64,000 nt of DNA, from the NCBI GenBank assembly GCA_951804945.1, contig OX638154.1, positions 62,372,001 through 62,436,000 on the forward strand, read 5' to 3'. Both the position numbers and the translations under genes were made by a program. Source of the stretch: Podarcis cretensis (lineage: Eukaryota). Positions 4,398 to 40,934 of this stretch are shown here, one piece after another. Within the stretch, counting starts at the first letter, position 1. Each line of letters begins with the position of its first letter. The notes beneath the pieces are model-generated. The model had not been told where the DNA came from. It was given only the letters and a program-made list of their open reading frames with translations, and made no database searches.

Positions 4398-4658
<261 letters not shown>

Positions 4659-7600
4659 TAGAGTGGCTTTTTTAGGGCTTCGAAGCTATCTTCCATGTTT
4701 GTATTTATTTAAAAATTATTAGACTGCGTTTCAGATTTAATATACGAGGTAGTGTGTGTGAGATTACAGAAGTTGAGTGCTTCTGCAGCTGTAAATATTT
4801 TGGTAATATTCATTCCAGTATTTTAGGCAAGCATTTGTAGTGTTGCATTATGGTTTCCGTGACTCTCAAGGCTTCCTTATTCTAAAATAATACTGAGAAT
4901 TAGGTTTGCTTGCCCCCAAAGAGTGGCATCCTGCAATTTATATTATGTTGTAAAATGACAGGTGGGAGACCCTTTCAAACTATTGTTAACGTGAATTGAT
5001 TTTATTCTTTAATGGCTTTTAATGGCATTGCAGGAGAGGTTGTTTTGTCGATTTAAATGTTGGAAAGTTTGAATGAAGTCTTTCTACGTACCATTGATAC
5101 TGTTGTTCCACTTCTGGATTTGTTAGTTACTTTTCAAGTCATTCTTTTGGCTTAACTTTTCTTCTGTTTCCTGCTACATAAATATCTTACCACTTGTCAC
5201 AAAATATTTTGCTTCTTAAAGGAAATTATATTATTACTTTTTAAAGTATAATTGCAGCTTATGGACAAAAGGCCCCTTGATTTTTTTTCTAAGTGATTCT
5301 TTTGTTATTGTTATTTCTAATTTGCACACAATTCTGAAATAAAGATGTTGATTTTGAATTTGTGAGCAAGCAAGCTAAAAGACAGTCATTCTAATAAATA
5401 CTTGTCAAAGCAGTCCATTGTATTAAACCAGGGCTTGCTAATATGGTATCCATGGGTGCGTGTGCAGGCACAGAGGCCTTCCTTTGTGCCCGCAGAGTCC
5501 CCTCCCCAACTGAAATTAGACTTGGGAGAAGTATTCTGTTGTAGCCAATAAGCTAGGTAGCATTGTGTCCTTGATTGTGGTGTGTGTATGTGGTGTCCAC
5601 AACAGTTTCTGCTGTTTGTAAATGTGCCAATGGACTCACAAATATTGGTGATCCCATTATCACTTCTGGTGCTACTCCATTCTCATGAAGCAGTTGCAAT
5701 CTCTTAGGCCACCAATACCAAGAGAACTAAAGAACTTATATCTTGCCATGTATTGTGGCAAGGTCTAAGTTCTTAAATTGCTGTTACTCTCTCTGAAAAC
5801 ATGTGGTGAAGGGTGGGTAATTCAAAGTATTACTAGTAGTAGTAGTAGTAGTAATAAAAATAATAATGTGTTAATAGTAAAAGATGGAGGGAATGTAAGG
5901 ATGAATGGTTGGGCTTAAGGAAGAGCACTTACGTTTAGAAAAATAGGAAGAAGAATACTATAGTGCCTTTGTTTCATAATACAGGGGGGAAAGGAAAGAA
6001 TAAGGTGAAATGGGGTGCTGGAAGAAAGTAACTTGGCAAATTTCTAGTCATGAAAGTGGGGTTGCTGAAAAGGGGATAAAAGAAGGGAAGAGCTAATGAT
6101 ACAAAAGAGTATCAGAAGGTTTAGCATGTAGAGATGGTAGGATGCATTCTAGAAGAGTGATGAAATCTAAACTAACTGCTCAGTTTGGCAAAAATGATTT
6201 AACAGAAGTCACCCAGCCCCCGTCCTCACTTTGGCAAAAGCGACATAAGACATTTACAGCTGTTTTCTTGGGCAGGCAGAGTTCACAGGTATGAAAAAGT
6301 TTCCACTTACTTTAACAAAACCATATAAAATATTGTATAAGCTAAAGTGCTTTCCCAGTTTCTCTTAGAAAGGAAGTTAAAAATCCCATTCATTCTCAGG
6401 CAGCCTGCTTTTCACCAAGTCATATATGTCTTAAGATTATTTCAGTTTCATATTCTAGGCTGGAATGGGGAATTTCTGGATACTATTGAACTCCCCAGCC
6501 AACATGACCAATAGTTTGGGATGATGGAAACTGCATTATAGGGGAAACTCCCATAGGTGTTGCTTATGGGTGGTGGAGGTAGCCTGGATCTTAGGGGCTG
6601 TACAGGCACACTGGCAGACCCAACCTGGCATTTCCACTGGTTTTCCCACACAGCCCAGATTTCCACCACCTAGCCTCATTGGTCTCCTTTCCTATAAATG
6701 GCAGACATTCTACTGCCAGGAAGCTAGTGTTCTGGCTCTGATCCAATGGCCAACATACTTATACTCAAGGCTACCTCAAAACCACAGAGCTGTAACCTGT
6801 AGCAAATACATGCATAATATTGGAGAAATTATGTAGATGGCACCATGCTGAGAAGATAAACATGACTACCAGCAATTCCTGTTCATGTATCTACACATTC
6901 AGCCCCTATCTCCATGTCACATGCAGTAACACTGTTAGAATCAAAGTTTCACACTCCAGTCACTGCATTTTTCTCTGCTGAAGCATTATGCATCTGTAAA
7001 CTTCCAGGCAAAATGCCCATAAGGAAGGGTTCTGCCCTATGGTTACTGCTACATCTGATGCAATTTTTGCAAACAAGTGTGTGTTGCCTTATTTGTAGTT
7101 TGGGCATGATAGACCAAGCAAAACACAGCATTAAATCCTTGCTCCTAATACTGTACTCATGGAGACTCGCATCCATTTACCTGCACTCCAGTGTGCTTGG
7201 GGAGCTCTCAGGCCTAAAAAGGCTGGAGTCTGCCAGAAAAGATGAATTTCCTTTCACCACAGGAAGACACAGGGAAGTAAAACAAAGCAGACACGTAGTA
7301 AATTATTCCTGCTTTTCAAATACCACTTGCGGTATCCTCCTTACCATTACTTTATCTCAGCACTTTCATCACATAACTCTTGCTAACGGAGAACGAAGGA
7401 AAGAGGAGATAATGAGGATACTTGGTAAGGAAATCAAGCGGTGTCAGGCTTCAGTTTGTACTCTGGTGCAATTCCGCATAGGCTCCATTTTTAAACTAGT
7501 ATAAACTGTTATACAGCCATAAATACACCTAAAAGCTCTCAGCTTTGGGATTTTGTTTTATTTTAATCTGCTATGATCAAATGCACTCCGTGAAGCTGAA

Positions 7601-8196
7601 TGATATAAAACATTCTGCTTTCCCCTTTCCTTTTCTCTCTGTCTTTCTCTTTCTAACTGCATTCTGTAATCCAACACAGATGTGATGTCCTTTTTAACTT
7701 ATGTGGCCCTTTTGAAGGCTGACATATACTGTAAGGTACTGACTTCTCCTTTAGATTTCTTTAAATTGATATATAGGTCAAACGGGCTGCTAGATATTTA
7801 ACCTTAGAATTAATAATCTTCTCTCACTATTTCTCACCACAGATTAATATTTTCATGTGGCTTTAAGCCTGCAAAATAGTGAGCTGACAGTGCTGATTAA
7901 AATTACGTTTTTTTTAAATTTTTGAATATCTTCTTTTTAAAACCCTTTGTTATTTGATAGCAGCACAAGGGTATAACTGGTTGGGTTACCTGGCCTCCCA
8001 CTCTCTTAACATTTCCCCCCAGTTTATTTTTGAATTTCAAGCTTTGAACCTGATAGGAAGAAAGTTGTTTTAAATTCTGTTAGGCTCTGGTCCCCAGATG
8101 AGTAGCAGTGGATATAAAAGACTGTGATACAAGGCTCATGGAAGTGGGATGGAATTCCAAAGATGAAATAAGAATTTATGATAGATACCCATTGCG

Positions 8197-8979
8197 TGTC
8201 GAGGTCCCCAAGCCACCCCCCAAAATAAATCACAATTCACACAGAACTTTTGTTTAAGGTTTTTGGCATAATTTTGGCCACAACTTTATTAAAATACATA
8301 AATATGAGTGGTTGCTTAGACACTGGTTACGACTATCTGTCCCCGCCCAGGGACAGAACTGACTTCCGCAACCCTGCGAAAGCCAGTAAGGGAAAACATT
8401 TTGGGGAGAAAATGGAGCTGGGCCCCAGACCCTCACCTCTCCCTGCATGCTCCCAGGGGCTTGCGCTGCCCAAGCCCCACACTAGGGATTCGGACGAAAG
8501 CATGGCGAGCCCCTGGGTTCCTTTAATGGAATTCCCTTGCAGCAGCAGCATTGGAGGGGCATGCACAGCCAACCCTTACCCCTCCACCAACCAATTTTTT
8601 AACCAATGCCAAACGGAACCTTACAAGTTGTGACGATTTGCTACGCAGTAGGGAAAAACCAAATGATACCAGCCAATCAGCCAAATGGACAAAATTCTTA
8701 CCAGGCCCCTGCCCCAAAAGCAGATCGCCCCATGACAGGCATAGTAAGGTCAAATGCAAAAGCCCTAAATTAGGGAGGGTGGGCGGGTGATCCGGTGCAC
8801 ACAGCGAAAGAGAACGCTCAACGCTGCGTGCTCAGTATATAAAATCCTTGGTCCATCCCACAAATTGACAACATCAAAATTTCCTCAACAATCCAACATA
8901 GCCCAATCACAAGCCTGGCCATCCAAATGGTCCCACCCAGCAACCGAAAGGGGGTGTCCTGCTAGACCCCACTGCAACA
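8197..8979 (-). mobile_element. Probable solo LTR (Gypsy-like), about 783 bp
   Basis: Termini TGTCG...CAACA. The 4-bp flanks TGCG and CGTG are each one CpG transition from CGCG. AATAAA on the minus strand at 8285-8290, TATA-like run at 8836-8844, and GC/CpG content above the flanks. Confidence 0.6.
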
Positions 8980-11001
8980 CGTGCTCTCCATGAAGGAGAA
9001 CACGCTTTATCAAATGTGTTGTTCTGGATTGTTTGTCCTTTCTTTTCCTCAAACTGTCTTACACATTTCTCACACCACTGTAATAATCACATCTTCTGCA
9101 CTTGGGTGCAGGGAAGGAGGAAAAGAGAAGCTGAACAGGAAAAACATGGGAGGAGCATGTAAAAAGTGAGTGGAAAGCCTAGCTATTCCACAGTAAATGT
9201 CCAGTGTGGAGGCAACGTGGATACTTTGCTACTAAACATTTAATGCATTTTCAAGAGCAAGCTCACTAGGACCTTGAGATCACAATGCATTAGTCTCAAC
9301 TGCTATTACATGAAAGAGGATAGCTGTGTTAGCACATTAAAGATTTCTTTTTCACACTCTGAGTGATTGGTTTCTTATCTACAATCTCAGAATGCTGCAC
9401 TGCTATTGGATTTGTCACCAATACAGCACAAACATGTATTTATTTATTTATTTATTTATCTAGATAATTTTTACCCCATTCTTCAGCCAAAAAAGGCTGC
9501 CAAACCAACTGAAATACTATAGTCCCTTGTCTGCAAGCTTACAATATTAAAGGCACAACACAAAAGGAAAGGGGGGTGGGAATGGAAGAGGAAAATGGCA
9601 AACATACACCAGTTATATAGTAGCTCCTGTAATGGTTAGCTGGAATGGAAGCAGTTAGTGACAGGAGGAGCCTCATCTTGCAGCAGATCTGATTGTATGA
9701 GCCCTGCTGTCCTTCTCCCCCACTAAAGTAGCCTGCTGGAATGCCAGCTGATGGGGAGAGGACCCAGTGGTCGGTTATCAGAGCCAATGTTTTTTACTTG
9801 CAAGAATTGGGATGCAAGCAATGATAAAAGCACAGAGCATGTTGAAAAACAGCAATTCCCCCCTATGCTTATATTTCCTCTGTGCAACTCACCAACATAG
9901 GGTCTTTGCTTACTGCAATCAGTATAGCTAGTTTTTGAAAACTGTTAGAAAATTTCTCCCAGAGTTGTTGAACTTCTTTTAGGGGGGAGATTACCAATTG
10001 GACACCCCTGTGGTCGACCAATTGGACACCCCTGATCTATATCAATTGCTGTGTAGAAAAGAGGTTATAAAAAGGTAGTCATGGCACTCCAAAATGTACA
10101 TATCTTGAAAAAAACCAAGCCACCACCACACCATCCTCACAATCTTTAAAGTATGCTAAAACCATTGTAGGCTGATGAAGGTCCTTGCATGATGGATATA
10201 CACTAACGTGTAATAAACTCCATTGCACTGTACTGTTTTCTTCACCCTCTGGAGTAGGTGTTGGTATCTGCACAGGAACAGGAGGAGCTCAGAGTTCTTC
10301 TGCACCATATATTCCTGACTACCGTGTTAACTTTTTTCTGTTTCTTCCTGTGTCCAGCTGTGGTAGCTACTAGAAGCACTAGTTGAACTGACTTTAGTCA
10401 GATATATTATACAGAGCTTAGAGAATCATTGCTGAAATCCATGATGATATATTTCTTTTTGTACACTGTCTACTTTTACAGAGCCTCACTTCTGTTATAT
10501 CCAACAGGCTGCAGCCAACAAAATCTATTAATGAATATGATGCTACAAAAAATGCAGCAGGTCAATAGAAGTACTTGAGGCACAATCATAGTCTTTTTCC
10601 ATTGTAGCCATTAAGTAAAATAATTAAATACCCTTCATTTGCTGTAATAGACGTAGACACGATGACAGAAAGTGACCGTTGGATCAATATGTCTCTCTTT
10701 CTTCTGCAATTTATGAAGGAGCTGGTGACCATTATCTGTGACAATAATCTGTTTCATTGACATTATTGCCTTAGTACCACAAAAGTTATAGAGGGAAGAA
10801 CTGTCTGAAAATTGCATCCATCTTTTTTTATTATTATATTGGACAGTGTCTTCTTGGCTTTCCTCGATCTTTGGGTCTCTTCCATTATTACCTTAGTAGT
10901 ATGACACTCGTTCTAGCATGTGTCCTTCCCATACCACCCCAGTGACATTGGAAGTCCGTAGTCCTGTAGGAGGAGTCCATGCAGTGGCTCCTTCCCATGC
11001 T

Positions 11002-11247
11002 TTGTTGTTATTGTTTAGTTGTTTAGTCATGTCCGACTCTTCATGACTCCATGGACCAGAGCACGCCAGGCACTCCTGTCTTCCATCACCTCGCGCAGTT
11101 TGGTCAAACTCATGCTGGTAGCTTCAAGGACACTGTCCAACCATCTTGTCCTCTGCCGTCCCCTTCTCCTCAGCTTCAGGATCTGTCCTTCCATTGAGCA
11201 CTCAGGGCTGATTTCCTTCAGAATGGATAGGTTTGATCATCTTGCAG
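11002..11247 (-). mobile_element. RTE-BovB LINE 3' end with internal deletion
   Basis: (CAA)n-type tail read as ttgttgttattgtt, then tagtcatgtccgactcttcatgactccatggaccagagcacgccagg and ccaaccatcttgtcctctgccgtccccttctcct, the typical squamate BovB 3' end. Recalled consensus sequence is missing near 11170. Confidence 0.85.
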
Positions 11248-11450
11248 GGCCAGTTTGGGGTGGGGTGTAGGGAGACGCTTGAGGGACAGAGGCTGAGGCC
11301 TGGTGGGTCGCAATCCCCCTGCTTCAGGCCTGAAGTTCCAAACCCCTAGAGTAGAAAAAGAAAAGGGTTTTAATAATGGAGGAAGAGTAGGACAAAAGGC
11401 TGGGAAGAAACTTGGCACAAATTTTCTGTTTTGTGACCAATTGCAATAAA
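11244..11450 (+). repeat. 207-bp direct copy of 12513-12719
   Basis: Manual alignment gives 6 substitutions in 207 bp and no indels. Confidence 0.97.
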
Positions 11451-12001
11451 ACGACATGCAAATGAGGATGGCCTAATTCTCCCCACAGAGGCAGAAGCTG
11501 GGATTCTGCACCCTCCCTTGTGCAAACAGCCTGTCTCTCCAGACTTTTAACTCTCCCCCCATTCCAAAGTTTTTTCTCCATGCAACCATGTTTAAATGAG
11601 GAAGAAGGCCTGTGTGGGCTAGGATTTGGAGGCTGGTACCCTCTTGTGCCTGGGACGCGGGTGGCGCTGTGGGTTAAACCACAGAGCCTAGGACTTGCCA
11701 ATCAGAAGGTCAGCGGTTCGAATCCCCGTGACAGGGTGAGCTCCCGTTGCTCGGTCCCTGCTCCTGCCAACCTAGCAGTTCAAAAGCACGTCAAAGTGCA
11801 AGTAGATAAATAGGTACCGCTCCGGCGGGAAGGTAAATGGAGTTTCCGTGCACTGCTCTGGTTCGCCAGAAGCAGCTTAGTCATGCTGGCCACATGACCC
11901 GGAAACTACGCCAGCTCCCTCAGCCAATAAAACGAGATGAGCGCCGCAACCCCCGAGTCGGTCACAACTGGACCTAATGGTCAGGGTCCCTTTACCTTTA
12001 C
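11449..12001 (+). repeat. About 553-bp inverted copy of 34151-34704 (203 bp of flank plus a Sauria SINE)
   Basis: The flank differs at about 2 of 203 positions and the SINE part at about 22 of 350, many at CpG. ORFs 11520..11813(+) and 34370..34633(-) are near-identical translations. Confidence 0.97.
11652..12001 (+). mobile_element. Sauria SINE (Squam1), passively duplicated copy
   Basis: Head GGGACGCGGGTGGCGCTGTGGG, B-box GGTTCGAATCC, (CTTTAC)n tail. Carries only the 5' TSD copy of the 34-kb element. Confidence 0.93.
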
Positions 12002-12269
12002 ATGATCCAGAAAGAGATGTATCCCCCCCCCCCATCATAGATTTCTTTATAGCTGGATTGGGGCAGATTTGTGGGCTTGGAGTCAAAGATAGCAGCCATA
12101 ATAATGCTACAATTGGTTCCTTGCACAATCCAGTGTATTAGGTACCATGTGCTGTAAAGTTTGTCTTTTCAGAAGAATCTGGGTTCCAGGATGATTAAGT
12201 AGCCAGGAAACTGACATTAGAAAAGAAATTAAATGGAAGCATACTTGCAACAGCTCCAGTTCGGTAGAA

Positions 12270-12617
12270 CATGGCTGAGGAACCTTTTTCAGACCAAAGA
12301 CCACATTCCCATCAGAACAACCTTCTGATGGTCACATGAGTGGTGGGTGGGGCCAGGGGCAAAAGTGGGTGGAGCAACAAATGTAAACTTTACAATTGTA
12401 CAGTAGCTTAATTTCCCACAGTGCTTAATTTTATTCTCTATCCAAGTGAGCAAGAGGCGTTATCAGAGTTCAGGGACACATTCCAGGCAGGAAAAAACAC
12501 TTGGGGGTTAAAGCAGGGCCAGTTTGGGGTGGGGTGTAGGTAGACGTTTGAGGGACAGAGGCCGAGGCCTGGTGGGTTGCAATCCCCCTGCTTCAGGCCT
12601 GAAGTTCCACACCCCTA
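12270..12617. mobile_element. Degenerate non-autonomous hAT-type element
   Basis: Imperfect TIRs CATGGCTGAGGAACCT / AAGTTCCACACCCCTA and 8-bp flanks CGGTAGAA / GAGTAGAA. Confidence 0.6.
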
Positions 12618-12931
12618 GAGTAGAAAAAGAAAAGGGTTTTAATAATGGAGGAAGAGTAGGACAAAAGGCTGGGAAGAAACTTGGCACAAATTTTCTGCTT
12701 TGTGACCAATTGCAATAAAGTTCCCACCTCTTTAATGTAGTACACGATTTGCAATAAGAAAACACAGAAGTGTTTTCTTTTGTCTTCAATATTTTTAATT
12801 GTGCCCATGACAACCTATGTTCCATAATAATATTTCATTTTAACTTTTATTTTCCTGCACACCTGGCTCCATAGTTGCTTACGTACTCCTTTACCATTAA
12901 AAAAGTAATGAATTTAATAAATAGTTATAGA

Positions 12932-13069
12932 CAGTGCTGTTTTTCTAGAAAAAGAGGTGCTGGAACTTACCCATGAACGCCTCCCTCGTTCTCTTAGAAT
13001 GGCACTGGCACCCACCTGAGAGGTGCCGGAACTGACTACCTGTGAGTTTCCCCTTAAAAAAAAGCCCTA
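12932..13069. mobile_element. Short non-autonomous hAT-type element
   Basis: Ends CAGTGCTGTTTTT / AAAAAAAGCCCTA, 8-bp flanks GTTATAGA / GGTATAGA (7/8), internal GAGGTGC(T/C)GGAACT repeat. A related copy lies at 59915-60168. Confidence 0.7.
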
Positions 13070-16000
13070 GGTATAGATATATTTCAAGATAGTCCAGCGT
13101 GTATTGTAATCCATTGAAATAATTAAACCTCATTATGGTGTTGTGATTTATTGCCACGTTTCAGCTGAGCGTAATAGCCTAGGTGTCCTTGTTCCATCAA
13201 ACCTTTAACATACAACTATCCATATGGCCGGTCCAAAGAGATGCTGCTTTTGTAACCTATTTCAATGCCAGCTGTGAAAGAGATGGAAAAAGTTACTCAT
13301 GCCTCCTCCCTGGAAGTACAAATTTAGCTGAATGTCTATGACCCTTTTTGCTGATGCAGTTCTTGTGTCACAATCACTGCTGCCCTTGTGGGCTCCACAC
13401 TGGAATACTGCAATGCAGGTACCCTTGAAAACCAATTGAAAAACTTATAGGTATAGCAGAATGTAAGTACATCTTTATTTTAGGACAGCAAATTGCTGAA
13501 GAATACTGCCTCTGATATCTGAAATACTTTCTTGTTTGTCCTTTGCTACACTTCAAAATGCTGAATTTAGTATCCCAAAGTAAAAACAAACAGTCACTAT
13601 TTTTTCTTAGATTGTTTCTGAGGCAAGTGGTTTTGAACACAATCCCAAATTTCATCCTGGGGCTTATATAGAAGGTTCTCTCATAATTAGCAAGAAACAG
13701 TGTATGATAGAACCCCAATGACTTGTCTTTTCAGATCAACTGTGTTGGCAGCAGAATTCTCCTATATTTAAATTTATATTTTATTGTAAGACTTCTCATA
13801 GTTACACTATTTATTTGTACATTTGTCAAAACGTTTTTAGCTGACTTTTCTGGCCCAACAGGCCCTCAAAGGCAGCCAACAATCAGGAAAATAAAATTTA
13901 AGCACCACGTCAGTATTATAAAATACAGTCTCACAATAAAAATAACTCTACCCGTAGATTGGCTTTGTCATACACACTCAAGATTTACAGGGCAGGTCTT
14001 GTTTTGATAAATAAATCACTTTTTAAAATATAAAGCACCTCTTCTTTTTTATTCTGTGCCTTTTAAAAGATGTAGTTTGCACGTTTGGGACACATCCTGC
14101 TAACCCTGTTGAATAACAGGGGCATCAATTGTCATTTTAGAGCCATTTAAGAAGTATGAATTTCTCCTTGTTTTTGTGTTTTAGTTTCTTACTTTAGTTA
14201 ATAGTTTTTTGTGACGTAGAATAAAATGATTAAAACACAAATACAGCATTGGTTTCATTGGGCTTTGTGAAGTGGAATGTGAGGGTGTTGGAAGATAACT
14301 GCAAGCTGCAGTCACGCTCCTTTTGAAGAAAGAGCAAGAAGTATGTGGAATATGTTGCTCTCAGTGTAAGATAAGCTGGAGTGTGTTAATCAAATATTTT
14401 CATGATATGAAGGCAGTTAAGAAAACAGTAAAAAAAATTACTAATTGCTCTCTTAAGTAAACAGATCTATCATTAGGTTGTCAGGAAGAGTGACATTGAG
14501 CAGAAACACCTTGCTAATCCCCTGAAGATAAGTATTTAACGTAATTAGGCAGACAGTGTCTCTTTTGTTGAATGTAGCATTAATCAGTAGGAAAACTCCA
14601 ACTTTACAGAAAAGAGCTTTTCCTGATATGCCTTTGTGTTAGAAAGCTTCTTACACTTCTTTTGTCAGGACACCATACTTGTAGTAATGACAGCTACAGT
14701 TTTTTGGGTTTGTATGATGTACCATTTAATATGAGGGAAGCATTCTTATTTTTTCATATTGTCACTTATTTGTGTGGCTGCGTGATATATTAGGTTAAAA
14801 AAAAGCACTGTATTACATAAGGTTGTTTATATATTTATCATTCTATTAGTTACAAGTGGGGGCAATGGCAGTGGGGGTCTCCAGATAGATTTGGGGCCAT
14901 GAGAGGTTAATCTTTGTTTTCCCTACCCCCCCCCCCACACACACCTGGGGCTTTCATTTGCCCTGATTTACTTATTTTAAATGGCATTGGATCAGATGCG
15001 TAGATTCAGTGAGTTGAGTTATGCTCATGGAAGGGAAGGAAGGCAGCTTTTGCTGATTCCCTCTCCTCCCTGCAACCCTTTTCACACACTGTGGAAAAAA
15101 TTTGCTTTCCTTCCAGAACAATGTGGAAGTGGCATGGGTAAGGGGGAATAGATACTCTTTGTTCAAACCTTAATTTTAAAATTTGCAGCAAATAGTTGCT
15201 TTAGGTGCGGTGCTTCTCAGATGGAAAATGGCATGGGGGAAAGAGCTAAATTTCCCTTGTTCCACTCTCCAACCAGATCAGGGCCCCCAACAGCTGCTTT
15301 TTGTAAAGGAAACACAGGACTCAAGCATCAGATCCAAAAACATGATCAAAGTCACGTCTGGTTTGACATCTCCTTTCATTCTGAGTAGCTCAGAAGGCTT
15401 TGAGGGGAAAGGATCGAGTTAAAAGATGATAGGCAGACTTCTCAAAGTAACAGGTAGAGGTCAAGTTGGTTTATTTGTTGGGCAGAACAGAATGTAGAGA
15501 TGAAAAATCAAATGCCCTGCTGTAATAAGGGTTTAGGTGAAAATGCTGACTGGCCTAAGTTTTGATTCCAGCTGACAGAACCTTTTCTAGTGTTCATTAC
15601 TTGATTTCACAGTTCAGGCAATTTTAAGAGGCTTAGCATTATATTCTTGTTCTCCTCTATAAAACGTTTTGATCGCTTTCTAATTTTTGCTTTAAATAAA
15701 GTTATTGGGGTCCACTATCAAACACAGTTCCACTTTTTAAGTTTCTGTAAAGTCAATATATAATCACTGTACAAGAAACTGAGGTTAGCTGTTAGAAAGT
15801 TGTGTTGTTTCTTTTCTTCCTGTGACAGTTTATGTTACTCTTACTGATTCATTTGAAAATTCCTCTATACCTCTATGCAGTAATACCAGTTAATGTTCTG
15901 TAAAAAAAAATTCACACTCTGGCTGGGCCCCTCGCTACACTTTTTGGGCACCTGATAGAAGTATACATACAGAAGTGGTCTTCTAAGAAGGCATGCAACA

Positions 16001-16150
16001 GACAAAGTCACCAACCCATGCAACATTTTACCTATGTAGGATAGGGAAACTTAAATAACTCATCAGTACACAAAAATGTGCTACAATAATATTGCTACTG
16101 TGCTGTGATAAATGCGAACCTTCTGAAGTTTGGGAAGCATTGTTGTAGAG

Positions 16151-16277
16151 CAGGGATGAGAAACCTGTGGCCTTCCAGATGCTCGAAAACAGCTCCCATC
16201 ATCCCTGACTATGCTAGTTGAGGCTGATGGCAGTTGTGCCCCCAAACAGCTGGAGGGCCACAGGTTCCCCATTCCTG
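16151..16277. mobile_element. Palindromic hAT-type MITE, about 127 bp
   Basis: CAGGGATGAGAAACCTGTGGCCTTCCAGATG ... CAGCTGGAGGGCCACAGGTTCCCCATTCCTG. Decayed relatives near 33443-33567 and 55318-55757. Confidence 0.75.
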
Positions 16278-16820
16278 TTCTATTCCAAATGAACAGGACA
16301 GGTGGCTCAGGACAAGCCAAGGCAAAATTATTTGGGGGGATGCAAGAATGAGCAGAAGTAATAGATCAAGGCTGCAAGCAGGAAGAACAAACTACTCAAA
16401 CTATATAGGGACAGAACCATGAGAGGTGTGTAAGGCAAGAATTTTGCAAGCTAGGAGGCACGCTTGTTGCCGTCCATCTGTCTTAGGAGACAATGGAGGA
16501 GTGCATCTTTTGGGATGAAGTTACTGTACCTGATGTGGCTTAAGGCACACTGTTCAAAAGGGGAAAGTGGTAGATCAAGGAGCAATACTTCAGAAGGTCT
16601 TGGGTACAGTAGTCCTTGCAGTTGGGAACCTAGGAAACACGATCGCCTAAGCATTATATAGGCACTATCTGAAAATAGAGAAACTTCCCAACCCCTCTTA
16701 TACTAACTTAGAATGTTGTTGCCTTATGGCCACCTAGGTAAGGTTCAGATCAGAATCACAGTGCTGAAAAGGGAAGGATTTAATGGAGGAGGCACTACTA
16801 CTTCCATTTGAAAAATGGTA

Positions 16821-17046
16821 CAGTGGTACCTCGGGTTAAGTACTTAATTCGTTCCGGAGGTCCGTACTTAACCTGAAATTGTTCTTAACCTGAAGCACCA
16901 CTTTAGCTAATGGGGCCTCCTGCTGCCGCCGCGCCGCTGGAGCACTATTTCTGTTCTCATCCTGAAGCAAAGTTCTTAACCCGAGGTACTATTTCTGGGT
17001 TAGCGGAGTCTGTAACCTGAAGCGTATGTAACCCAAGTTACCACTG
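16821..17046 (+). mobile_element. Tc1/mariner-pogo MITE, 226 bp
   Basis: TIRs CAGTGGTACCTCGGGTTA / TAACCCAAGTTACCACTG, TA flanks, internal TAACCTGAA repeats. Confidence 0.9.
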
Positions 17047-18124
17047 TACTAGGGAAAGGATTAAAGTAAGGCAACACAGAGTTGTTTCCAGTAAGTGGTT
17101 TCAGAGAGTATGGTGAAAGGAAGGGGGTGCACTGGGACAACTAGAAGTTATGTGTCCATTTGTGATCTGGCATCATAACAGAACTATTGATTGTGTAGTC
17201 AGTCAATACGATAACTATGCAAATGGAGTAAGGAATTCAGTCATGTTTGTGGTTCCTGGATTAATGCAGATTCAGTTGGGTAGTTCTCTCCTAACTTGCT
17301 CTTTTTTCTGGTTCCCTTTTCTCCATTCCTCAAGAGCTCCTAAGTATTGGTAAATCATGTCACCCGACAGTGCATCTCTGTGCTGATAAGATTAATTTTG
17401 AACAATTATGATTTATGTTTAATCCTGTTGAGATATAACACATTCATTAATCAAAATGTATATTAAATAGCTTCACATAACAACAAATTCTCCAGATGTT
17501 TTTATCCTAGACTCCTTGCTAAAGTAAAATGTGTTTAAAATGTTGCTATAATGAAAGCTGTAGTTCTAAATAAACTTGAATTTGTTTAGGTTATCTATCC
17601 TTATTAGTATAGCAGAAATTGTTGCAACATTTTTAAACCTCTAAAAGGTCAGTATCTGAAATAATAGAGAAGAGAATCATATTCAAATCCTTTCATTCAC
17701 TTCCAGTTTGCACTCCATTTGCATCTTGTAAGGATGTGGCTGAAACATAAGCCTATTTTTGATCACTGATTTCCAAAAGTTTCATGCCTCAGCTGCAATA
17801 ATAGGCAAAGACATACACAGCTATGTAAATGGTGTTTGAATTTATGATTGTATCATTTGCCTGTCATTGTATTTTCCACCTGCAAAGCTTCCATAAACCA
17901 GTGTATTCTGAATAGCCATGATTTGTTCTTACTGCTGTATGTGATCTATGCAGTAGAGTACAATCATGGTTGCAGAAATGGCTTTGGGAGACACCCAGAA
18001 ATTTAACAGTAAGACATCTGAGGAAAAGGAACTGTAAAATATAATGGCACAAAGTGTTATGGTACTATAGCATCTGAAGAAAATGTTAATGACATAAAAT
18101 TAGATGGGGGTATGTGCGGGGGAA

Positions 18125-18490
18125 GGGACGCAGGTGGCGCTGTGGGTTAAAGCCTCAGCGCCTAGGGCTTGCCGATCGAAAGGTCGGCGGTTCGAATCCC
18201 TGCGGCGGGGTGCGCTCCCGCTGCTCGGTCCCAGCGCCTGCCAACCTAGCAGTTCGAAAGCACCTCCGGGTGCAAGTAGATAAATAGGGACCGCTTACCA
18301 GCGGGAAGGTAAACGGCGTTTCCGTGTGCGGCTCTGGCTCTGGCCAGAGCAGCGATGTCATGCTGGCCACGTGACCCGGAAGTGTCTCCGGACAGCGCTG
18401 GCCCCTGGCCTCTTAAGTGAGATGGGCGCACAACCCCAGAGTCTGTCAAGACTGGCCCGTACGGGCAGGGGTACCTTTACCTTTACCTTT
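18125..18490 (+). mobile_element. Full-length Sauria SINE, CpG-rich (young) subfamily
   Basis: Head GGGACGCAGGTGGCGC, B-box GGTTCGAATCC, (ACCTTT)3 tail, TSD TATGTGCGGGG at 18111-18121 and 18490-18500. Confidence 0.95.
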
Positions 18491-19939
18491 ATGTGCGGGG
18501 CAGGGGTACAGAAGGTTCCACCAACCTTGGATTGTTTAGCTTTAATAAAAATGAAGCAAAATGGTTGTGAATGCAGGAGGAGAAGCTCTCAATGGATGAA
18601 TGAAAGACATTTCATGTTTTGTAGTAATACCTAGGAACGGTGGGGGAGAAGGCTAGTAAGAATGCTGATGCTTCTTGAAAAGGTCTTTCAGTAGCTGCTC
18701 CAAAAGGAAGCTGCTAACATGCACAGGTTTTTTTTAAGAGAACTAGAAAACAATTTTATGTCTCTTTTATATGCCATTCACATGTTTTAATTATTCACCT
18801 TCATGTTTCTTAAAATAATGATTATGATGAATTCAGTTATCATGCATAGTGGCATCATTTGAGTGCTGAGATAGTTGTTAACCGCTGTTAGAGCCCGGTA
18901 AATAGATTAGGTGTTTTAAGAAAGAAAAAGAAGGTCAGCATTTTGGTTGATGTGTATAGTTGAATAAATGGTGTAATAGGTTCGGTTACTATTTTTTACT
19001 TTCATTGCACAATGGTTATTGTAATGTTCATATGGTAGATAAAAGTAATAAGAGCCCAAGAATGTATGGGTCAAAACAATCCTCCACACAACTTTGTATT
19101 GCTGATTCATATACACATTCAAGCAGAAGCTGGACGGACAGCTGTTAAAAATGTTCTAACAATCACACCTATCTTATGCCAGTAAGGCCCACCTGATAAC
19201 TGATAGATTTTGCTTAACTAATAACTAAATTAACTTTATGTTAGCATATGGCATTGTTTTTGAAATTTGTTTTTATTTTGTTCTTTATTTTACGGCATTC
19301 AATTTTTCTGGTGCAGATAGGTTTTCTTATAGATTGTTTAGAGAGCCCCTCTATAACTGATATAGAGGCCAATGGTTCCCAAGCTGGGGGCACCTGCCCC
19401 TTAGAGGGTCCACTCATTTAAGGGAGGGGGGAGGCTTCTTCAAAAGGCAGGTGCTTTAAGTCCCATTGGAGTAGCTTCTCCCCTCCTTTAAATGAGTTAT
19501 GTTTAAAGAAGAAGAGGGAGGCTGCTTTAAATACCACTTTTTTTTCAAAGAGCTTTAAGAGAGACCCACCCCACTCTACTCCTGTTGTGTCTCTGGAGGG
19601 TCAAACAGGAGCAGGGGGTCAGCAAAATTTGGAGGAAGGGTTAAAAAGGGGCTCCTCATACTCAAGAAAGTTGGGAACCATTGGTTTAGGCTACATTCCT
19701 TCATCCTTTGCATATATTCCTCCTGTTGATCAATACTGCCTATCAATACTGCCCATATTTATATTGACATTAGTATTCAGTAACTTTCATTCGTATAGCA
19801 AACATGGAACTGTGCTGTATCATGATTAAAAAGGTATTCTGAGGTGGTTAATTAATCAATATATGGCATTTTAAACCTGAGAGGTGTTGTTTTTGGTTGT
19901 TATTATGGTATGCATTTTTGTGTTTTTATATTGTACACT

Positions 19940-20240
19940 TAGAATCATAGATCATTGAGTTGGAAGAGACCACAAGGGCCATCGAGTCCAACCCCCTGCC
20001 AAGCAGGAAACACCATCAGAGCACTCCTGACATATGGTTGTCAAGCCTCTGCTTAAAGATCTCCAAAGAAGGAGACTCCACCACACTCTTCCTAATGTTT
20101 AGGTGGAATCTTCTTTCTTGTAGTTTGGATCCATTGCTCCGTGTCCGCTTCTCTGGAGCAGCAGAAAACAACCTTTCTCCCTCCTCTATGTGACATCCTT
20201 TTATATATTTGAACATGGCTATCATATCACCCCTTAGTCG
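19940..20240 (-). mobile_element. CR1 LINE 3' end with internal deletion
   Basis: ATTCTATG-type tail and CR1 3' UTR. Minus strand translates [51 protein letters not shown]|SVVESPSLEIFKQRLD, the CR1 ORF2 C-terminus lacking the usual WN-LP segment. Confidence 0.92.
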
Positions 20241-20532
20241 GATCTTGGATGATTACCTCAATTTCCCCAACACCAGCACCAGCAGTGAAGATCTCAAAGT
20301 AGGTGGTCTTGTTGGCAATGTTGCCCACAGGCTCCAGGCCAGGACCCTGGGCAGTGACCTTGCTGGCATCCCTGTGCGATTTGTCCACATTCACCTCAAA
20401 GGGGCTCTTGGCAATGTGCTGCCCAGCAAACAGTACCGTCACCTTGTGGATTCCTGTCACTTTTAGCACATACCACACAGAGAACGTCCGGTTCTTGTCA
20501 TTGTTGGCAATGACCTTTGCTTCTTCCCGATG
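20239..20532 (-). pseudogene. FLNA: Processed (intronless) fragment of filamin A, Ig-like repeats 1-2, 98 codons
   Basis: Translates [98 protein letters not shown], close to recalled human FLNA (about residues 326-423). No introns, no start codon, no poly(A). Confidence 0.9.
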
Positions 20533-21288
20533 ATCTTTGGATAAAGGGTGGTATAGAAATTTAATAAATAATAAAAATAATAGTTCTAGAGTGACACTGG
20601 ATTTAGCATCTAGAAATACACTGAATTCTACCCACCCCACCCCAATCTTTGTATTACCTTTGGGAAGAGAATAGACACTGTGACGTTGTCATTTTTGGTA
20701 GTGATGGATGATTTACCCTTAGCAGAACTGTTCTTCAGCTTGGGAAAATGTGTAAAGTTATCCACTGAGAAGACAGATATTGTGAACAGAATTAATATAC
20801 AGCTTTCTCTCATTTACTGTATTTGGAGAATGCCCATGGATCTTTTCCTATTATGTAATAGGAAGCATTGATATTTCCTGACTAGCGAATACAAGGAGGT
20901 TCAGGATTTTAAACTATTGTGCTGCTCTGCTGATCCATAGAAGATGATGAATATGAAATATTCCTGCACCCACACTACTAAGTTGGGTTGGAGGTTTGCG
21001 AACTGCAGAATTCTGGAAGGCCTTCCTGGGAGACTTCATCATCTATTCCATGACTCCACTAACCTATTATTCCATTTTTGCTTGCATTTGTGCATTTGGT
21101 GGATGGACATGACATGCATGAGTTGGAATGAACAAAATAGCTTTATACTTAGGGAAATGACACATGAATGAAATTTTAGACAGCTTTAATTTGGAAAAAA
21201 TGCTCCAACTTATAGTAATACAAAATTGATATGTGTACACCCATCAAGATCAGTATTGTCTAAATTTTCTTTTTATTGTATACTATAC

Positions 21289-21323
21289 CCCGTACGGGCA
21301 GGGGTACCTTTACCTTTACCTTT
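21289..21323 (+). mobile_element. 35-bp extreme 3' fragment of a Sauria SINE
   Basis: CCCGTACGGGCAGGGGTACCTTTACCTTTACCTTT is identical to 18456-18490. Confidence 0.85.
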
Positions 21324-23948
21324 TATATTTAAACTATTAACTAAAAATAGAGTAAGGAACGCATTGTTTTCTTGAAATAAAATTATTTTGTTCTTTTTAT
21401 TGACATTGTGAGCCTGAGAAACATAGCTAGTTTAATTTAGATCAAGTGAGAACTGATATGGACAAATTGTTGTGCATTTCAATGAAAAAGCAGAATTAAA
21501 AAACACAGCAACCCAAAGTTCCAGCCGTTGAATTTGTTTTAAAAACACATAACTTTCATTTTACATTAGTGAAGTGTGTTTCCCATTACTTCTACCACTA
21601 AATATTAACAGAAGATAAAACCATGGGAGTCCAAATGCTTCTAAGGTACCTTCACACTAGGGCAGTTAGAACATTGTAAGTGGCTGAAAGTGCTTTAACA
21701 TTCATATGTACTCTTCTTAAAATGTTACATTAAAGCACCGTAGGCATGGGTTGTACCATTAGATTGCTTTATAAGAAAACCATTGGGTGCCCATTGAGCT
21801 AATATTCTGGTGCCCCCATATGCTTCAGGACTAGATGAATTGCAAAGGCACGTAGCCGCCTCCAAACAATGCTAATCCATTTGTGAATCCAGTGCCCTGT
21901 AGTTGCCACTGCAGTATGCATCCCAAAGAGTAATGGATGCTTAATTTGATGTAGACTAGTACAGGAACTCAAGTGCATTTATAAATTGCCACTATAACTA
22001 AATGAAAGAGGATATTCTCAGAAATATGCAGGCTGTGGGAGTTATCTGACTTAGTCATAGTCAGAGTCCATTGAATAAAATGGACTTAAGTTAGTCAAGG
22101 CTAAGTTATGTCCACTGATTTCATTCAGTTTACTCTGCGTATTAGTCAGATACCACATGATATCAGGAACATTAGCATAAGATGTGCTAAACTAGCATTT
22201 TGGTTTTAAGTTTATTTTTTAATTGCAAATACTGACAATCTTTGCTGTCTTAAGAATAATGTCATGTGGCTGTGATCATTTTAGAAAAAACTAGGTTTAT
22301 TTTGGCTTGTTCCTAGAACTTTTCTACTTGCATGCAAGCTCTTTTCCTGCTTTTATTAACCCATTCAGAGAATGTTTCAGTTCTGCTGCTTATACAGAGC
22401 ACCATGCTCATGCACCATAAAATGTGAATGATACTATTTGCTTTGCAACATCTAACTTGTCTTCCATACCTTTCCCCTCTTAAAGGACAAAATATTTATT
22501 AATAATAATAATAATGTTGTTTATATACTGTACACACTTGGTACTTTCAGTGATCTCTTATCCAGAGAAATTATTAGGTCCACAATTCTTTAGCTACAGT
22601 CATACAGCAGCATCAGATTCTGCTAAAGACCATTCACTAGGCCCTAAAATATGCTTTTAGAAATTAGCAGTTCTTGTTCAGTCCCTCTAAACATTTAAAT
22701 TAAATTCTCAAAATTTATGTTCTTCATGTTCTTCTGAATGATGAAGCAGTCATATTTTTGGATCTAATGGGTGCCACCACTTGCATTTAATTAATAGATT
22801 ATTCCTGAAGTCAAGTATGTCATACAAGCTGTCAAACACTTTTTAAAAAAGCCACCTCATTTAATACATATTATTATGAGATGGTTGTAAGAGATTTCAG
22901 TTTGCACTTTTATACTTTACTTTAAAATCCTGCACTAAATTATATTAGTGGTCCAAATTCAGAATAAGTTTGTTGTGCTTAAATGTCATTGAAATCAACT
23001 GGGCAACTAATTTATGTCCATCATTGCAATGAAACTAGCTTCCTCTGGATTTGGACCAACGTGTATGTAACTTGGAATATTCAGTATTAAATACTTATCA
23101 TGTCACATACATTATCTTAGCAGTTCTTACAACTCAGAAAGAAAATGTATCAGCTCCAATAAAGTACCCAGGGGCTAAGACCCCCTACTGAGTTGTGGTG
23201 GTATTTGAAAGCGCCTTCTTGATAAGTATTCATGCAACACAATTCTCTGCATGCCCCTCCCCCCCAAAGGAAGTCCCACTCTGTTCACTGGAGCTTAATT
23301 CCAGGTAAATGTGCATAGGACTATATTTTAGCCACTATGCTATACCAGCTATCATTCAAAGAAGTTTTCCCCAGTCTGGTGCCCATCAGAAATCTTTGGC
23401 CATGAACACTCAACCTCATGTTTCTGTAATTCAGCAATCTCAATATGAATTGCTCTTCTTGACCACTTTTAGACTGTAATCCTGAACATACTTACTTGAA
23501 AGCAAGCCTCTTTGAACATTGTGTCTTACTTCCAAGTAAACATGCACTGCATAGGATGACACTGTTAAAACGTAGCTAATATGGCCAATTAGCAACCACA
23601 AGGAGAACAGTTGATATTTTCTGTCACTACATAGGTCATGATTAGAATTGCCTTGTGTGAGGTTGAGCAACTATGGCCGTATAACTTTTTGACCCAGTGC
23701 ACTTCTGTTCTGTCAAATTTTGACTATGAACTTTACACTGTTTGTACAGATCTCCGTACCTGCCCATTGTAAAAATGCTATTATCTAAACTATAACAATC
23801 AGATTTGTATTGTTAGTAATTTTAAACAATAAAATCCAACACATCAGTTAATATAGTAGTAGAGTTAGGAAAAGCCAACAGTTTGAAAGGAAAACCATAA
23901 AAGGTATTAACGACACAATCCTATTCATGTCTACTCAGAAGTAAAGTC

Positions 23949-24107
23949 CCTTCAAGCAATGAGAATCCTGTCCTTTTAATGTATTTGTTATAATATGTAT
24001 GCTGCAATCCTGAGCATATTTATCTGGGAGTTAATCCCAGTTCATCCCAGCAGCATGTGTATTATAAAGAATACAGTAATAATACAGGATTCTCATTGCT
24101 TGGAAGG
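23949..24107. repeat. About 160-bp fold-back inverted repeat
   Basis: Perfect 19-bp outer arms at 23953-23971 and 24084-24102, plus imperfect inner arms TTATAATATGTATGCTGC / GCAGCATGTGTATTATAA. Confidence 0.85.
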
Positions 24108-24540
24108 AGTCTACTTTTTAAATTACCTCACTGATTTTCTGTTCTGATAATGTTGCCTCTTTCTTTTTGTATATCTATGTGCTTGTGCATACAGACACCA
24201 AAGATGAGAAAAGTGCATAAACAGAGGCTACAGTTTATCAAAGATCTTTTAAACGGAACATTCATTTATTATGGATAAATTGTATGCACGAAGCACAGAC
24301 TACAGACTTGATATTAAACCAACATAAAAATTAATGGTTTGTATCCAACACTCGGCGAGTGGAACTTCCCTTCCTTTCCTTTCCCCAAGCACCCCCAAAT
24401 CTGCTTGGGGGATGATTCCCAAACCCTCTGGAGCAGATTTTGAGGGTTTATGGGATGAGGCTGGAGGAGAGAGCTTCCATTGTGCAAGTAGCAGGACATC
24501 AGCATTGGCTAGAACCCCATCAGCCGTATCATTTATATGA

Positions 24541-24685
24541 GCAGAGACCATAGCTCAGTGGCAGAGCACACAGTTTGCATGCAGGAAGTCTAAGGTTCAG
24601 CCCCTGACATCTCCAGTTAAAAGGAGGCAATTCTGAGATGAATGGACAAATAATCTGTCCTGGCATAGTGTCCTATGCTCCTATT
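24541..24685 (+). mobile_element. tRNA-derived SINE (Squam3-like), decayed
   Basis: A-box TAGCTCAGTGGCAGAGCA, tttgcatgcag, decayed B-box ggttcagccc and cctatg-type tail. Related copies at about 38845-38965 and 60228-60406. Confidence 0.65.
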
Positions 24686-25460
24686 AGCATCAAACCTGAT
24701 GATACAATGTCAGAAGGGGGTCTTCACTTCTGTGAAAGATCTTTTTTCCAGTGAAAGCCTCTATTAGTGGTAAGTTTTAAAACAAATGAACAATTTCAAT
24801 ATTATAAAATACCATTCAGGTTGCGCAACACTAAAAGGCTTTTTAAATTTTATAAATAAAAAATCTCCCACACAATGGGAAATGGATGCTGTTTGTAACT
24901 CAGAAACCTTTAACGCTGCAGAAACATCTGGAACTCTTCAAGGCATTCATCCAGTCCACCCACCCAGTTCCCAAAACACTGTCTCAGTTTTGCGCATATC
25001 CCCAGAACTTTCCTACCCTTGCCGCCAGGATATATGTACATTTCACCTCACTCTCACTCAAGGGTTTAACAGAAGCAGGAACCTGTGGGCAGGAGGCAGA
25101 TCTGCTCTTGGTGTTCAGCCTATGTGGTTTCAAAACTCTGGGCAGTTTATGAGACATATTCAGCACCTGTCCATAAGCCAGAACAATCTCTTTAAAATGT
25201 ATATATAAAAATGTATATATAAAATCTAAGCACTGCACCTACTGTAGTTTGAAAAAACGTAAAGAATAGGGCCTAATAAGAATGCTAATTAATAACATGT
25301 CAGCAAGTTTCCTTCAGAGATTTAAATATATATATATTTGGATGCATCTTAATATATATTTTTTCATGCCAGTGATGGCCACCCTTTGCACCCAAAGACA
25401 ATCATAAATAAAAGTGAACCTTCAAGCTTGCTGTTGTATGCAATTTAATTTGTCCTTTAA

Positions 25461-25724
<264 letters not shown>

Positions 25725-31700: not shown

Positions 31701-34144
31701 CCTCTGTCAGCTCCCTATCTTAAATTTCCTACAATTCCCCAGAATGCCTGAAGAAGCATTGCCCCAGTGCCTTGTGGGATGTAACTGCTACCTGCTCATG
31801 GGATAGGGACTGGAGTTCCACCAACGTAGGAGGGGACCCACTTTTCTAGTGTCCCCCCTCAAACCTGGAGTTCCCAGGACATAACTTATGTTTAACTGTG
31901 TCTCAGATGTGAAAAGTTTGAAGACTACTGAATTAAATATTATGACAGCTGCTGGGGAAGATATTGCTATAGGATTTGATTAGAGACTCTTCCCTGTTCT
32001 GACTTACAGTATTTGTGCTCTTACATTCCACTCTGCAAGCAAGACGCTGGCAAATAGTTAAACCTAGACCTAAATAAAAGTCAAGAACCGTGTAATTAAA
32101 ACTCTACCTTTATTGGATTTTAAAGAGTTGCCCTGTGACATAGGAAATATTTAGATGAGTAGCTTATTTAACTGATTTGTATGTGAGTGAACAGCTTAGA
32201 GGACTACTACCCTAAATTAACTATAAGACCACCCACTGAGATTGCCTCGTAAAGGATCCTGATTGCTTAGCTTCATTATATGCAACCATTCAATAAAATG
32301 CTAGATAAATGCATAACTAAAAGCTCTATTACACTAATAATTTGCGCAAAGATAGATGTGTGGGACACCATGCTGGGTTAATTTGTCATCCCTGCAGCAA
32401 ACTTCTAGAGATGGCCTTTTTAGTGAGGAATTGTGTTAATATGTTGTTCCACTGAGGACATGTTAGAGCAACAAGATGACTTGGTCCCTTAATCTTTTAA
32501 AGAGGCAAATATGCCCTGAGAGGAAAGTGGCAGGGAGAAGAATTGGGGTGATTAACAAAGTGGACCTAGATTTAAAGTTACCCTGACAAAAGAGACTAAA
32601 TTCCGCCTATATAAGGGAAGTGGGGAGGACAGGAAGAGCGGGGAGGCATTTTTTTTGAACACAGTAATAGGATTTCATGCATATCTAAAATAATAACATA
32701 AAAATTGAATACTCTTAGACCACAGTATTTAGCCTGCACTTTTGCTGATTACATATTCAGTTTCGTTGCTTTTCTTTGATCTGTCCATGGAGTTAAACTG
32801 TATGCTTTGAACAGAGTATTGAACTGTAGTATTTTATGCTAAATTTCCTTTTATGCTAAATTCTCCATCCTGCTCAGACATTCACACACCAAAGTCCATT
32901 ATTATATTTAAATCCAGAACCCATGTTTAAGCACCAGAGCTCAGGATTTCCAACCTCTCGTATTGACAGAACCATAAATCACATTAAAGTTAAGTGAATT
33001 ACTGTACCATGCAACTATAGCTGTAACAATGTTTATGTAGTATCAGCTTACCATCTGCAGAATGGAAGTGAGGAGAAACACTGATATTCAAAATGGGACT
33101 AGGAGTCCTAATGACTTAGCAGCAATCTATCACTCTGGATTCATTGGTTCCACTAATATACCCATTTTAGTATCAAAGCAGAATTCTATCATTGCACAAA
33201 CAAAATATGACATTATTTTACAAGTTTTTATTTAATACACTGCATTCAAGTGTGAAATAATTTATTTTTTGAATTTTTTTTGTTGAAGCGACTAATGAAA
33301 CCCAGTACAGACAGTCTGAATACGAGCCTACAGTACATAAGATATTTGGTTGGATTTAGACTTAGTCATGCTTAGTGCAGACTCATTGAAAACAAGCCAT
33401 GACTAACTTAAGTCCCATTGAATATTTCTGTATTCAGTACATCAGGCATAACGAACCTGATCTTTTTGATGGTGACACCCATCATCCCTGAACATTAGTC
33501 ATGCTGGTTAGGGCTAATGGGAGTTGGAGTCCAGGAACATATGGGAAGCCAAAGGTTCCTCGTGACAGCTATAAGTAGAAAGAGTATAATTTTGCAAAAC
33601 AAACAATTGCAGCAGCAGCAGGCCTTAATCTATCATGTTCTTTATTCAAGAGGTTGTCAGGAGTCCATTGAGCTCACCCAAATATCTGAACAATTCATTT
33701 GGCAATGCATAGCAGTTTCCATTTTTTCAGCAGAGTTTGTTACATTTTTATCCCATCCTTCTTCCAGAAGCTCTGGGTGGCATTAATGGTTCTTCCCCAC
33801 ACAACTACTCTAGCCTCTGTGGGTTGGATTTGGTTGACAGATGGTGACAGGTCAAAGGTTGCCAAGTGAGTGCCCCACTTAGTGAAAATTGTCTGATCAT
33901 CTTCAGCCTGGGCCCAAAGTAGCTAGTTGCTTTAAAGCTGAAGAAACAATTATCGCTTGGCAATAGTTCTTTGTTGAAGGCTACCATAGAATCTTGCTCT
34001 CATCTTAGCAGACCTCCTTCAGCTCTTTGCTTCAGTAATACCAGCTCCTTAGTTAGATCTTCGGCTTCCCTTTAGAAGTCAACCTCTGCTGCTCACTGCT
34101 TCCCCTTCTATCTAAAACATCTTGTGCATGCTAGGCACAAGAGG

Positions 34145-36440: not shown

Positions 36441-36446
36441 TTGGCT

Positions 36447-36451
<5 letters not shown>

Positions 36452-36485
<34 letters not shown>

Positions 36486-36508
36486 GAGAGGGAGAGAGAA
36501 AGAAAGAA
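36452..36508. repeat. (GA)n and purine-rich microsatellite
   Basis: Read directly. Confidence 0.9.
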
Positions 36509-40871: not shown

Positions 40872-40934
40872 AATTTCAGTAGATCTGCCATGAGTAAAAT
40901 GAATTTCAGTAGATCTGCCATGAGTAAAATGAAT
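40872..40934. repeat. Perfect 30-bp tandem duplication
   Basis: AATTTCAGTAGATCTGCCATGAGTAAAATG twice, followed by AAT. Confidence 0.95.

Follow-up and report, generated by a model that had tools for sequence, protein, structure and literature searches.

A three-part insertion in an NFI-family gene of a lizard, possibly made by extension of both ends of a break from BovB and Sauria SINE tails

The block at 11002-12001 of the window (the whole 64-kb stretch of DNA analysed here) is composed of three abutting parts: the 3′ end of a BovB element, a direct copy of sequence located at about 12.5 kb (segment 2), and an inverted copy of sequence located at about 34 kb (segment 3), which finishes in the tail of a Sauria-type SINE. 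When the one-event models considered below are combined, the block is probably the product of one BovB-associated composite event. As to the particular course of this event, the reading that we prefer, although only tentatively, is a BovB-driven insertion at a staggered double-strand break in which both ends of the break were extended. That the block arose as one BovB-associated event had been proposed from the sequence alone, and this proposal is plausible in view of the exact abutment of the parts, the weak outer TSD, and the outer junctions common to four organisms. A further part of that proposal, in which one cDNA end hopped twice, is less well in accord with the arrangement of the parts, as described below.

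The anatomy of the block was obtained by BLAST of positions 10500-12800 against the whole window and by global alignment (Table 1). Segment 2 is 97.1% identical to its donor over 207 bp. Segment 3 is aligned with the reverse complement of its donor over 554 columns with 23 mismatches and one gap (95.7%). In the global alignments that included the flanks, the homology of both copies to their donors breaks off sharply at the ends given in the table. Within segment 3, only two differences from the donor fall in the 203-bp non-SINE part, while the SINE part contains 22 differences including the gap, of which 12 are CpG transitions. Adjacent parts overlap at both internal junctions, by GCAG at the first and by AA at 11449-11450 at the second, where both donors have TAAA and the copy has TAAAA. 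The block is bounded by CATGCT on the left and CATGAT on the right; a match of at least five in six positions has a chance probability of about 0.005 with a fixed offset and about 0.04 when slack in the boundaries is allowed. Thus, the three-part anatomy with its GCAG and A-run microhomologies was found by self-BLAST of the window and global alignment to be as claimed in the sequence-only reading, and both copies of the imperfect outer TSD that it had named are present.

Table 1. Positions of the parts of the block, their donors and the NFI-type frames in the window
Feature	Position	Strand	Evidence
CTF_NFI frame	4398-4658	+	profile positions 52-103, E 9e-9
Possible short TSD, left copy (CATGCT)	10996..11001	.	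5/6 match to CATGAT
BovB (RTE-clade LINE) 3′ end, 5′-truncated	11002..11247	-	match to published copies, contig depth ~1e6
GCAG microhomology, BovB 5′ break point / segment 2 start	11244..11247	.	alignments, other BovB copies
Segment 2, direct copy of 12513-12719: repeat end + 126 bp of unique flank	11244..11450	+	207 bp, 6 mismatches
Segment 3a, inverted copy of unique flank 34704-34502	11449..11651	+	2 mismatches in 203 bp, low depth
Segment 3b, Sauria-type SINE from 34501-34151	11652..12001	+	alignments, tail motif
Possible TSD, right copy (CATGAT)	12001..12006	.	5/6 match to CATGCT
Segment 2 donor, 511 bp right of the insertion	12513..12719	+	BLAST, alignment; contiguous with upstream repeat 12340-12512
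CTF_NFI frame	25461-25724	+	profile positions 102-143, E 6e-10
Segment 3 donor: Sauria SINE (~34148-34501) + TSDs + 203 bp of head-side flank	34133..34704	-	BLAST, alignment
CTF_NFI frame	47102-47428	+	profile positions 206-264, E 5e-20

A search of sequencing runs provided matches from eight organisms, and the Logan contigs of four of them (referred to as organisms G, A, D and F) were aligned to 9800-13600 at a likeness of at least 90%. The material consists of contigs only, with one depth value per contig and with paralogous bubbles merged.

The leftmost part of the block was assigned as follows. The reverse complement of 11002-11045 reads ...GAGTCGGACATGACTAAACAACTAAACAATAACAACAA, and the published Podarcis muralis Bov-B copies end ...GAGTCGGACACGACTAAACGACTAAACAACAA(CAA)n (supplement of PMC13295347); the 3′ end found here is the same as the published P. 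muralis ends save for CpG decay. The tail of squamate Bov-B is (CAA)2-6 (Table 4, PMC13295347), and a CAA-rich tail adjoins the left flank at 11002 in the block. Because both the 3′ end and the tail match the published copies, this part is the 3′ end of a minus-strand BovB with its tail at 11002. Across 10943-11323, the contigs reach a depth of about 1e6. According to the loose-end consensus of the contigs, other BovB copies in the genome extend beyond 11247 with different letters, and therefore the element is truly truncated at this position and GCAG is a genuine 4-nt overlap. The fragment retains a 69-codon open frame at 11030-11236, a putative remnant of the ORF2 C-terminus. This 69-aa remnant had no match in Pfam and no named family in the ESM Atlas, and a protein search with it gave 119 related short unnamed ORF fragments, the best being a hypothetical protein of Podarcis lilfordi. 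When the sequence was read for a TSD belonging to the BovB part only, 10990-11001 and 11248-11260 did not match. As a separate observation, many BovB copies elsewhere part from this copy at 11085 and rejoin it at about 11168-11170 (loose ends, four organisms), which suggests the existence of BovB subfamilies, or of a derived short element, with a different internal stretch.

The donor of segment 2 can be recognized by its position relative to a repeat. In terms of contig depth, a moderate-copy repeat occupies about 12340-12593 and is followed by low-copy sequence at 12594-12720. The copy starts within the repeat and then extends 126 bp into the unique flank, which supports the 12.5-kb locus as the donor; segment 2 is therefore a segmental copy, not another transposon insertion. 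The sequence-only reading had placed this donor in a complete hAT-type element. This was not borne out: neither terminal inverted repeats nor an 8-bp TSD was found between 12180-12420 and 12480-12640, and the depth indicates only a moderate-copy repeat. Copy and donor differ at six positions, and at several of these (12541, 12578 and 12698) the donor contigs of other organisms show the letter of the copy, which at 12541 and 12698 is present in all four organisms; the donor letters of the window are therefore derived at these positions. Collapse of paralogues in the short-read contigs may contribute to this pattern in organism G, whose contig over 12354-12719 mixes the donor context with the letters of the copy. 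Just to the right of the segment 2 donor, a high-copy repeat is located at 12932-13031 (depth about 5e4). The contigs link it to the SINE ends 11652 and 12001, and it is probably a SINE-associated or composite repeat family.

As for segment 3, homology to the SINE copies of the genome begins at 11652 and stops at 12001, judging from the loose ends and joints of the contigs, and the depth of the SINE contigs is 1e6-1e7. The tail of the Sauria SINE is (ACCTTT)n (PMC13295347), and such tails are present at 11990-12001, 18476-18490 and 34148-34165. In segment 3 the tail is CCCTTTACCTTTAC, and it adjoins the right flank; it consists of two units, as against three in the donor, and the copy ends 3 nt short of the terminus of the donor SINE. 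The limits of the SINE head and tail were set by reference to another Sauria SINE of the window, a CpG-rich plus-strand copy at 18111-18501 with a clean TSD (TATGTGCGGGG) and an (ACCTTT)3 tail. The 3′ end of Sauria SINEs is in part common to Bov-B, by whose machinery these SINEs are likely mobilised (PMC13295347). The BovB 3′ end and the SINE 3′ region, aligned locally with each other, did no better than shuffled sequences, and only the short motif GAGTCGG-CA--ACT was common to the two. A scan of 10500-13000 by ARAGORN called no tRNA.

The direction in which segment 3 was copied is indicated by the TSDs. The minus-strand SINE at 34 kb is flanked on both sides by the 15-bp TSD AGGCACAAGAGGGTA (34133-34147 and 34502-34516), and the block contains this sequence once only, as its reverse complement at 11637-11650, inside the copied flank. 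Since only the 34-kb SINE keeps both TSD copies, the 34-kb locus is the donor, and copying in reverse, from 11.6 kb to 34 kb, is ruled out. The direction of copying that had been read from the sequence, with 12.5 kb and 34 kb as the donors, thus holds on the TSD pair at the one locus and the repeat-into-unique start at the other. In organism D, the donor-locus contig aligns up to the SINE head (11651) and no further, leaving 47 letters unaligned, unlike in organisms A, F and G, whose donor contigs reach 14-36 nt into the SINE; in organism D, either the SINE head has diverged or the donor differs there.

The contigs also bear on whether the block is real. It is very improbable that an assembler made it as a chimeric join of repeats. 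Such an error is conceivable in that very high-copy repeats, BovB and SINE, bound the block and none of the short-read contigs listed spans it, but copies and donors show a divergence of 1-6%, and independent contigs carry both outer junctions. Left-flank contigs starting from 9800 cross 11001/11002 into BovB in all four organisms, to 11030, 11031, 11057 and 11073, that is, by 29-72 nt. Right-flank contigs likewise reach the SINE tail in four of the four organisms, from 11974, 11984, 11987 and 11987; these overlaps with the tail are shorter than 31 letters, which is usual for 31-mer contigs at the edge of a repeat. In addition, organism G has 11449-11665 as a stand-alone 217-nt contig with the letters of the copy and about 1.5-2 times the single-copy depth, as is expected for a two-copy sequence between branch points. 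Misassembly, which the sequence-only reading had named as one way in which it could be wrong, therefore fails as an explanation. The same applies to its other concern, that the 203-bp flank might be a dispersed repeat that precedes Sauria SINEs. The depth is about 1e6-1e7 on BovB and SINE and at the single-to-double-copy level on 11324-11577, and this low depth rules out a dispersed repeat as the source of both the 203-bp flank and the segment 2 flank.

Neither an empty nor an intermediate allele was seen in the four organisms, and a joint from 11001 to 12002 was absent among the joints listed, which were the best-supported ones. In organisms A, D and F, the contigs show the outer junctions but not the internal ones at 11247 and 11449. 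The divergence of the flanks from the window is 0% in organism G, 1.6% in A, 1.8% in D and about 3.4% in F. Lower shares of matching words in organisms D, E and F were considered as a sign of the empty allele and rejected, because the flank divergence of 1.8-3.4% accounts for them and the outer junctions are present. From the outer junctions in four organisms, the block is real and older than the split of these organisms.

The block lies in a gene. Three colinear plus-strand open frames match the Pfam family CTF_NFI (PF00859), and on the strength of these matches the host is a predicted NFI-family gene on the plus strand that spans at least 4398..47428. The insertion and the 34-kb donor are in two different introns of it. 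Segment 3 and its donor form an inverted repeat pair of about 550 bp with 96% identity (11449-12001 and 34151-34704), with the NFI exon of about 25.55-25.68 kb between its two arms. An inverted pair of this kind might in principle influence local recombination or splicing, for example by promoting back-splicing or exon skipping.

The orientations of the three parts restrict the possible templates. For a minus-strand BovB, the first-strand cDNA corresponds to the plus strand, extending rightward from 11001. If one rightward-growing strand made everything, the template of segment 2 would be minus-sense and that of segment 3 plus-sense, and leftward growth would reverse both. Since segment 2 is direct and segment 3 is inverted, with both donors in one gene, the two templates are of opposite sense in either case. 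Consequently, RNA of a single sense, such as the NFI pre-mRNA, cannot yield both segments on one growing strand.

These strand relations can be accommodated if both ends of the break were primed. At the left end, the plus-strand 3′-OH at 11001 would have primed target-primed reverse transcription on BovB RNA, giving the 246-nt 3′ fragment. At the right end, the minus-strand 3′-OH at about 12002 would have primed reverse transcription in the (ACCTTT)n tail of an RNA bearing the Sauria SINE, made from the 34-kb locus in the sense of the SINE and thus antisense to the gene; copying would have passed through the SINE and then through 203 nt of its upstream flank. A 207-nt patch would have been taken from the sequence 511-717 bp to the right of the break, for which there are two options. 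Resection of the 5′ strand at the right end may have exposed the minus strand for copying by the left end, or the right end may have copied plus-sense RNA or DNA, in which case nascent NFI pre-mRNA becomes a possible template of segment 2. Finally, the ends would have been joined through the GCAG and AA microhomologies, leaving a TSD of 4-6 bp. We infer that there was a single event, that the template of segment 3 was RNA, and which of the ends made segment 2. Segment 3 bears no intron or poly(A) mark by which an RNA template could be told from a DNA one. In the sequence-only reading, nascent NFI pre-mRNA was the candidate template of segment 3. With both ends primed, however, that template would be a SINE-sense RNA antisense to the plus-strand gene, and any contribution of NFI pre-mRNA would be to segment 2.

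The evidence for priming at both ends comes mainly from the tails. Two retroelement 3′ tails face outward, the (CAA)n of BovB on the minus strand at the left edge and the (ACCTTT)n of the Sauria SINE on the plus strand at the right edge. Because of these outward tails and the ending of segment 3 in the SINE tail, two-ended priming is favoured over one end hopping twice. An end 3 nt early and a tail shorter by one unit would follow naturally from a start of reverse transcription within the tail repeats, whereas a random stop that close to the SINE terminus has an estimated chance of about 1-2%. The microhomology of 2-4 nt at both internal junctions and the short outer TSD also count in favour of this model, as 5′-truncated and complex L1 insertions have short TSDs and junction microhomology (PMC11702581). 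In L1, moreover, insertions from two RNAs are known, in which the pieces in opposite orientation are attributed to end-joining of two separate reverse-transcription products, and so are insertions with DNA templated from a near site (PMC11702581). Twin priming has also been invoked for L1 chimeras of the germline whose pieces are oppositely oriented (10.1101/2025.02.02.635956). The differences at non-CpG positions are 4/207 in segment 2, 2/203 in segment 3a and 10/351 in segment 3b, about 2%, and by our own arithmetic they are homogeneous (chi-square, p about 0.3); this is compatible with one age for segments 2, 3a and 3b.

In the other one-event model, which we regard as unlikely, template switching proceeded serially from the left end only: the growing strand passed from 246 nt of BovB through GCAG to the minus strand of 12513-12719, then through the A-run to the plus-sense sequence 34704-34151, with DNA or nascent NFI pre-mRNA as the template, and finally to the right end. 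The anatomy and the microhomologies fit this order of events, and serial template jumps are made by LINE reverse transcriptases (PMC2104539; PMC11702581). The gene being on the plus strand, its plus-sense pre-mRNA could template segment 3, and resection would expose the minus strand of the right end, as segment 2 needs. Nevertheless, segment 3 must then stop by chance within 3 nt of the 3′ end of the donor SINE with its tail outward (about 1-2%); homology of no more than 1 nt at the last junction would favour such a stop, and the shorter SINE tail is left without explanation. For these reasons, the double hop of one cDNA end that had been proposed from the sequence alone is not favoured here: it needs a chance end at the SINE terminus and leaves the outward tails of BovB and SINE without explanation.

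A stepwise origin is also unlikely. In this case, an older 5′-truncated BovB would have been struck exactly at its 5′ junction by a separate event, either a retrocopy of the SINE locus or the repair of a break with templated insertions, of the polymerase-theta type or by microhomology-mediated break-induced replication. Templated insertions made of DNA only, from distant sites, are known. That no empty or partial allele was found in the contigs of the four organisms and that the outer TSD is weak fit two steps as well, and the BovB tail, with CpG decay relative to the published copies, is not demonstrably as young as the copies. However, the second event must hit the BovB 5′ end to the base with a 4-nt overlap, for which the chance estimated from the density of repeat boundaries is about 1-2%; the BovB part has no TSD of its own; and the outward tails and the end point in the SINE tail become coincidences.

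Priming at both ends has its own difficulties. Its weakest link is the SINE-sense transcript that it needs, which must include at least 203 nt of upstream flank. Normal Pol III SINE RNA starts at the SINE head, and therefore the RNA for segment 3 must have been a read-through or antisense Pol II transcript. The shortness and imperfection of the outer TSD (p about 0.04 when slack is allowed) also count against the model; a published scan of Bov-B and Sauria copies was confined to TSDs of 10-49 nt and gives no norm for so short a one. The fit of the BovB side to the published ‘Tn-TA’ nick signature is partial: read in BovB orientation, it shows a run of T at −7 to −5 and a TSD with A as its first letter, but it has G instead of T at position −1. 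The SINE side does not fit the signature, which is acceptable if it was the second-strand cut.

For human L1, there is good documentation, from tumours and cell culture, of complex insertions that join a LINE tail, a second reverse-transcribed piece and local DNA. To our knowledge, they are barely documented for RTE-clade elements such as BovB or as fixed germline events. The present locus is a clean, datable example in several lizard species. Its donors survive within the window, so that one can tell straight from the sequence which way the copies were made, how the strands relate and where the microhomologies lie. The locus suggests that BovB intermediates are acted on by the same repair routes that resolve those of L1. 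A much broader statement is improbable at present, namely that, in the germline of lizards, BovB insertion intermediates as a rule make use of both broken ends, the second end being primed on SINE-bearing read-through transcripts of the same chromatin neighbourhood. If it were true, retrotransposition would copy unique intronic sequence in inverted form over tens of kilobases, the 550-bp inverted repeat pair around the NFI exon would be one product of this, and squamate genomes would have a general source of intragenic inverted duplications that has so far gone unrecognised.

Among the known systems, the block resembles L1 twin priming with two RNAs and complex L1 insertions in having pieces of opposite orientation, outward tails, microhomology and a short TSD (PMC11702581; 10.1101/2025.02.02.635956). 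It differs from them in three respects. One is the enzyme, which here belongs to the RTE-clade BovB. Another is the second RNA, which in the L1 cases is an mRNA, a tRNA or the same L1 RNA and here is proposed to be a transcript of a Sauria SINE locus with 203 nt of upstream flank. The last is that the L1 events were observed in cultured cells and tumours, while the present event is fixed in the germline of several lizard species. The carrying of unique sequence from upstream of a source element to a new site also recalls the 5′ transduction by L1 and SVA, but a read-through transcript would be needed in the present case, and we know of few if any descriptions of 5′ transduction for tRNA-derived SINEs.

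In a fungal LINE, double template jumps have given rise to multi-part chimeras (PMC2104539). The U6/L1 chimeras and the tripartite MINE chimeras of Magnaporthe are similar to the block in that several parts stand behind a 5′-truncated LINE 3′ end within one TSD (PMC2104539). All of their parts, however, have the same orientation and come from abundant RNAs, whereas here one part is in the opposite orientation and one copies local sequence that is not transcript-like, in a sense incompatible with that of the other part. Templated insertions at double-strand breaks, FoSTeS and microhomology-mediated break-induced replication produce similar short copies from near and far sites, with microhomology of 2-4 nt and with some copies inverted. 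These repair mechanisms need no retroelement, and they do not predict retroelement 3′ tails at both outer ends, as are found here.
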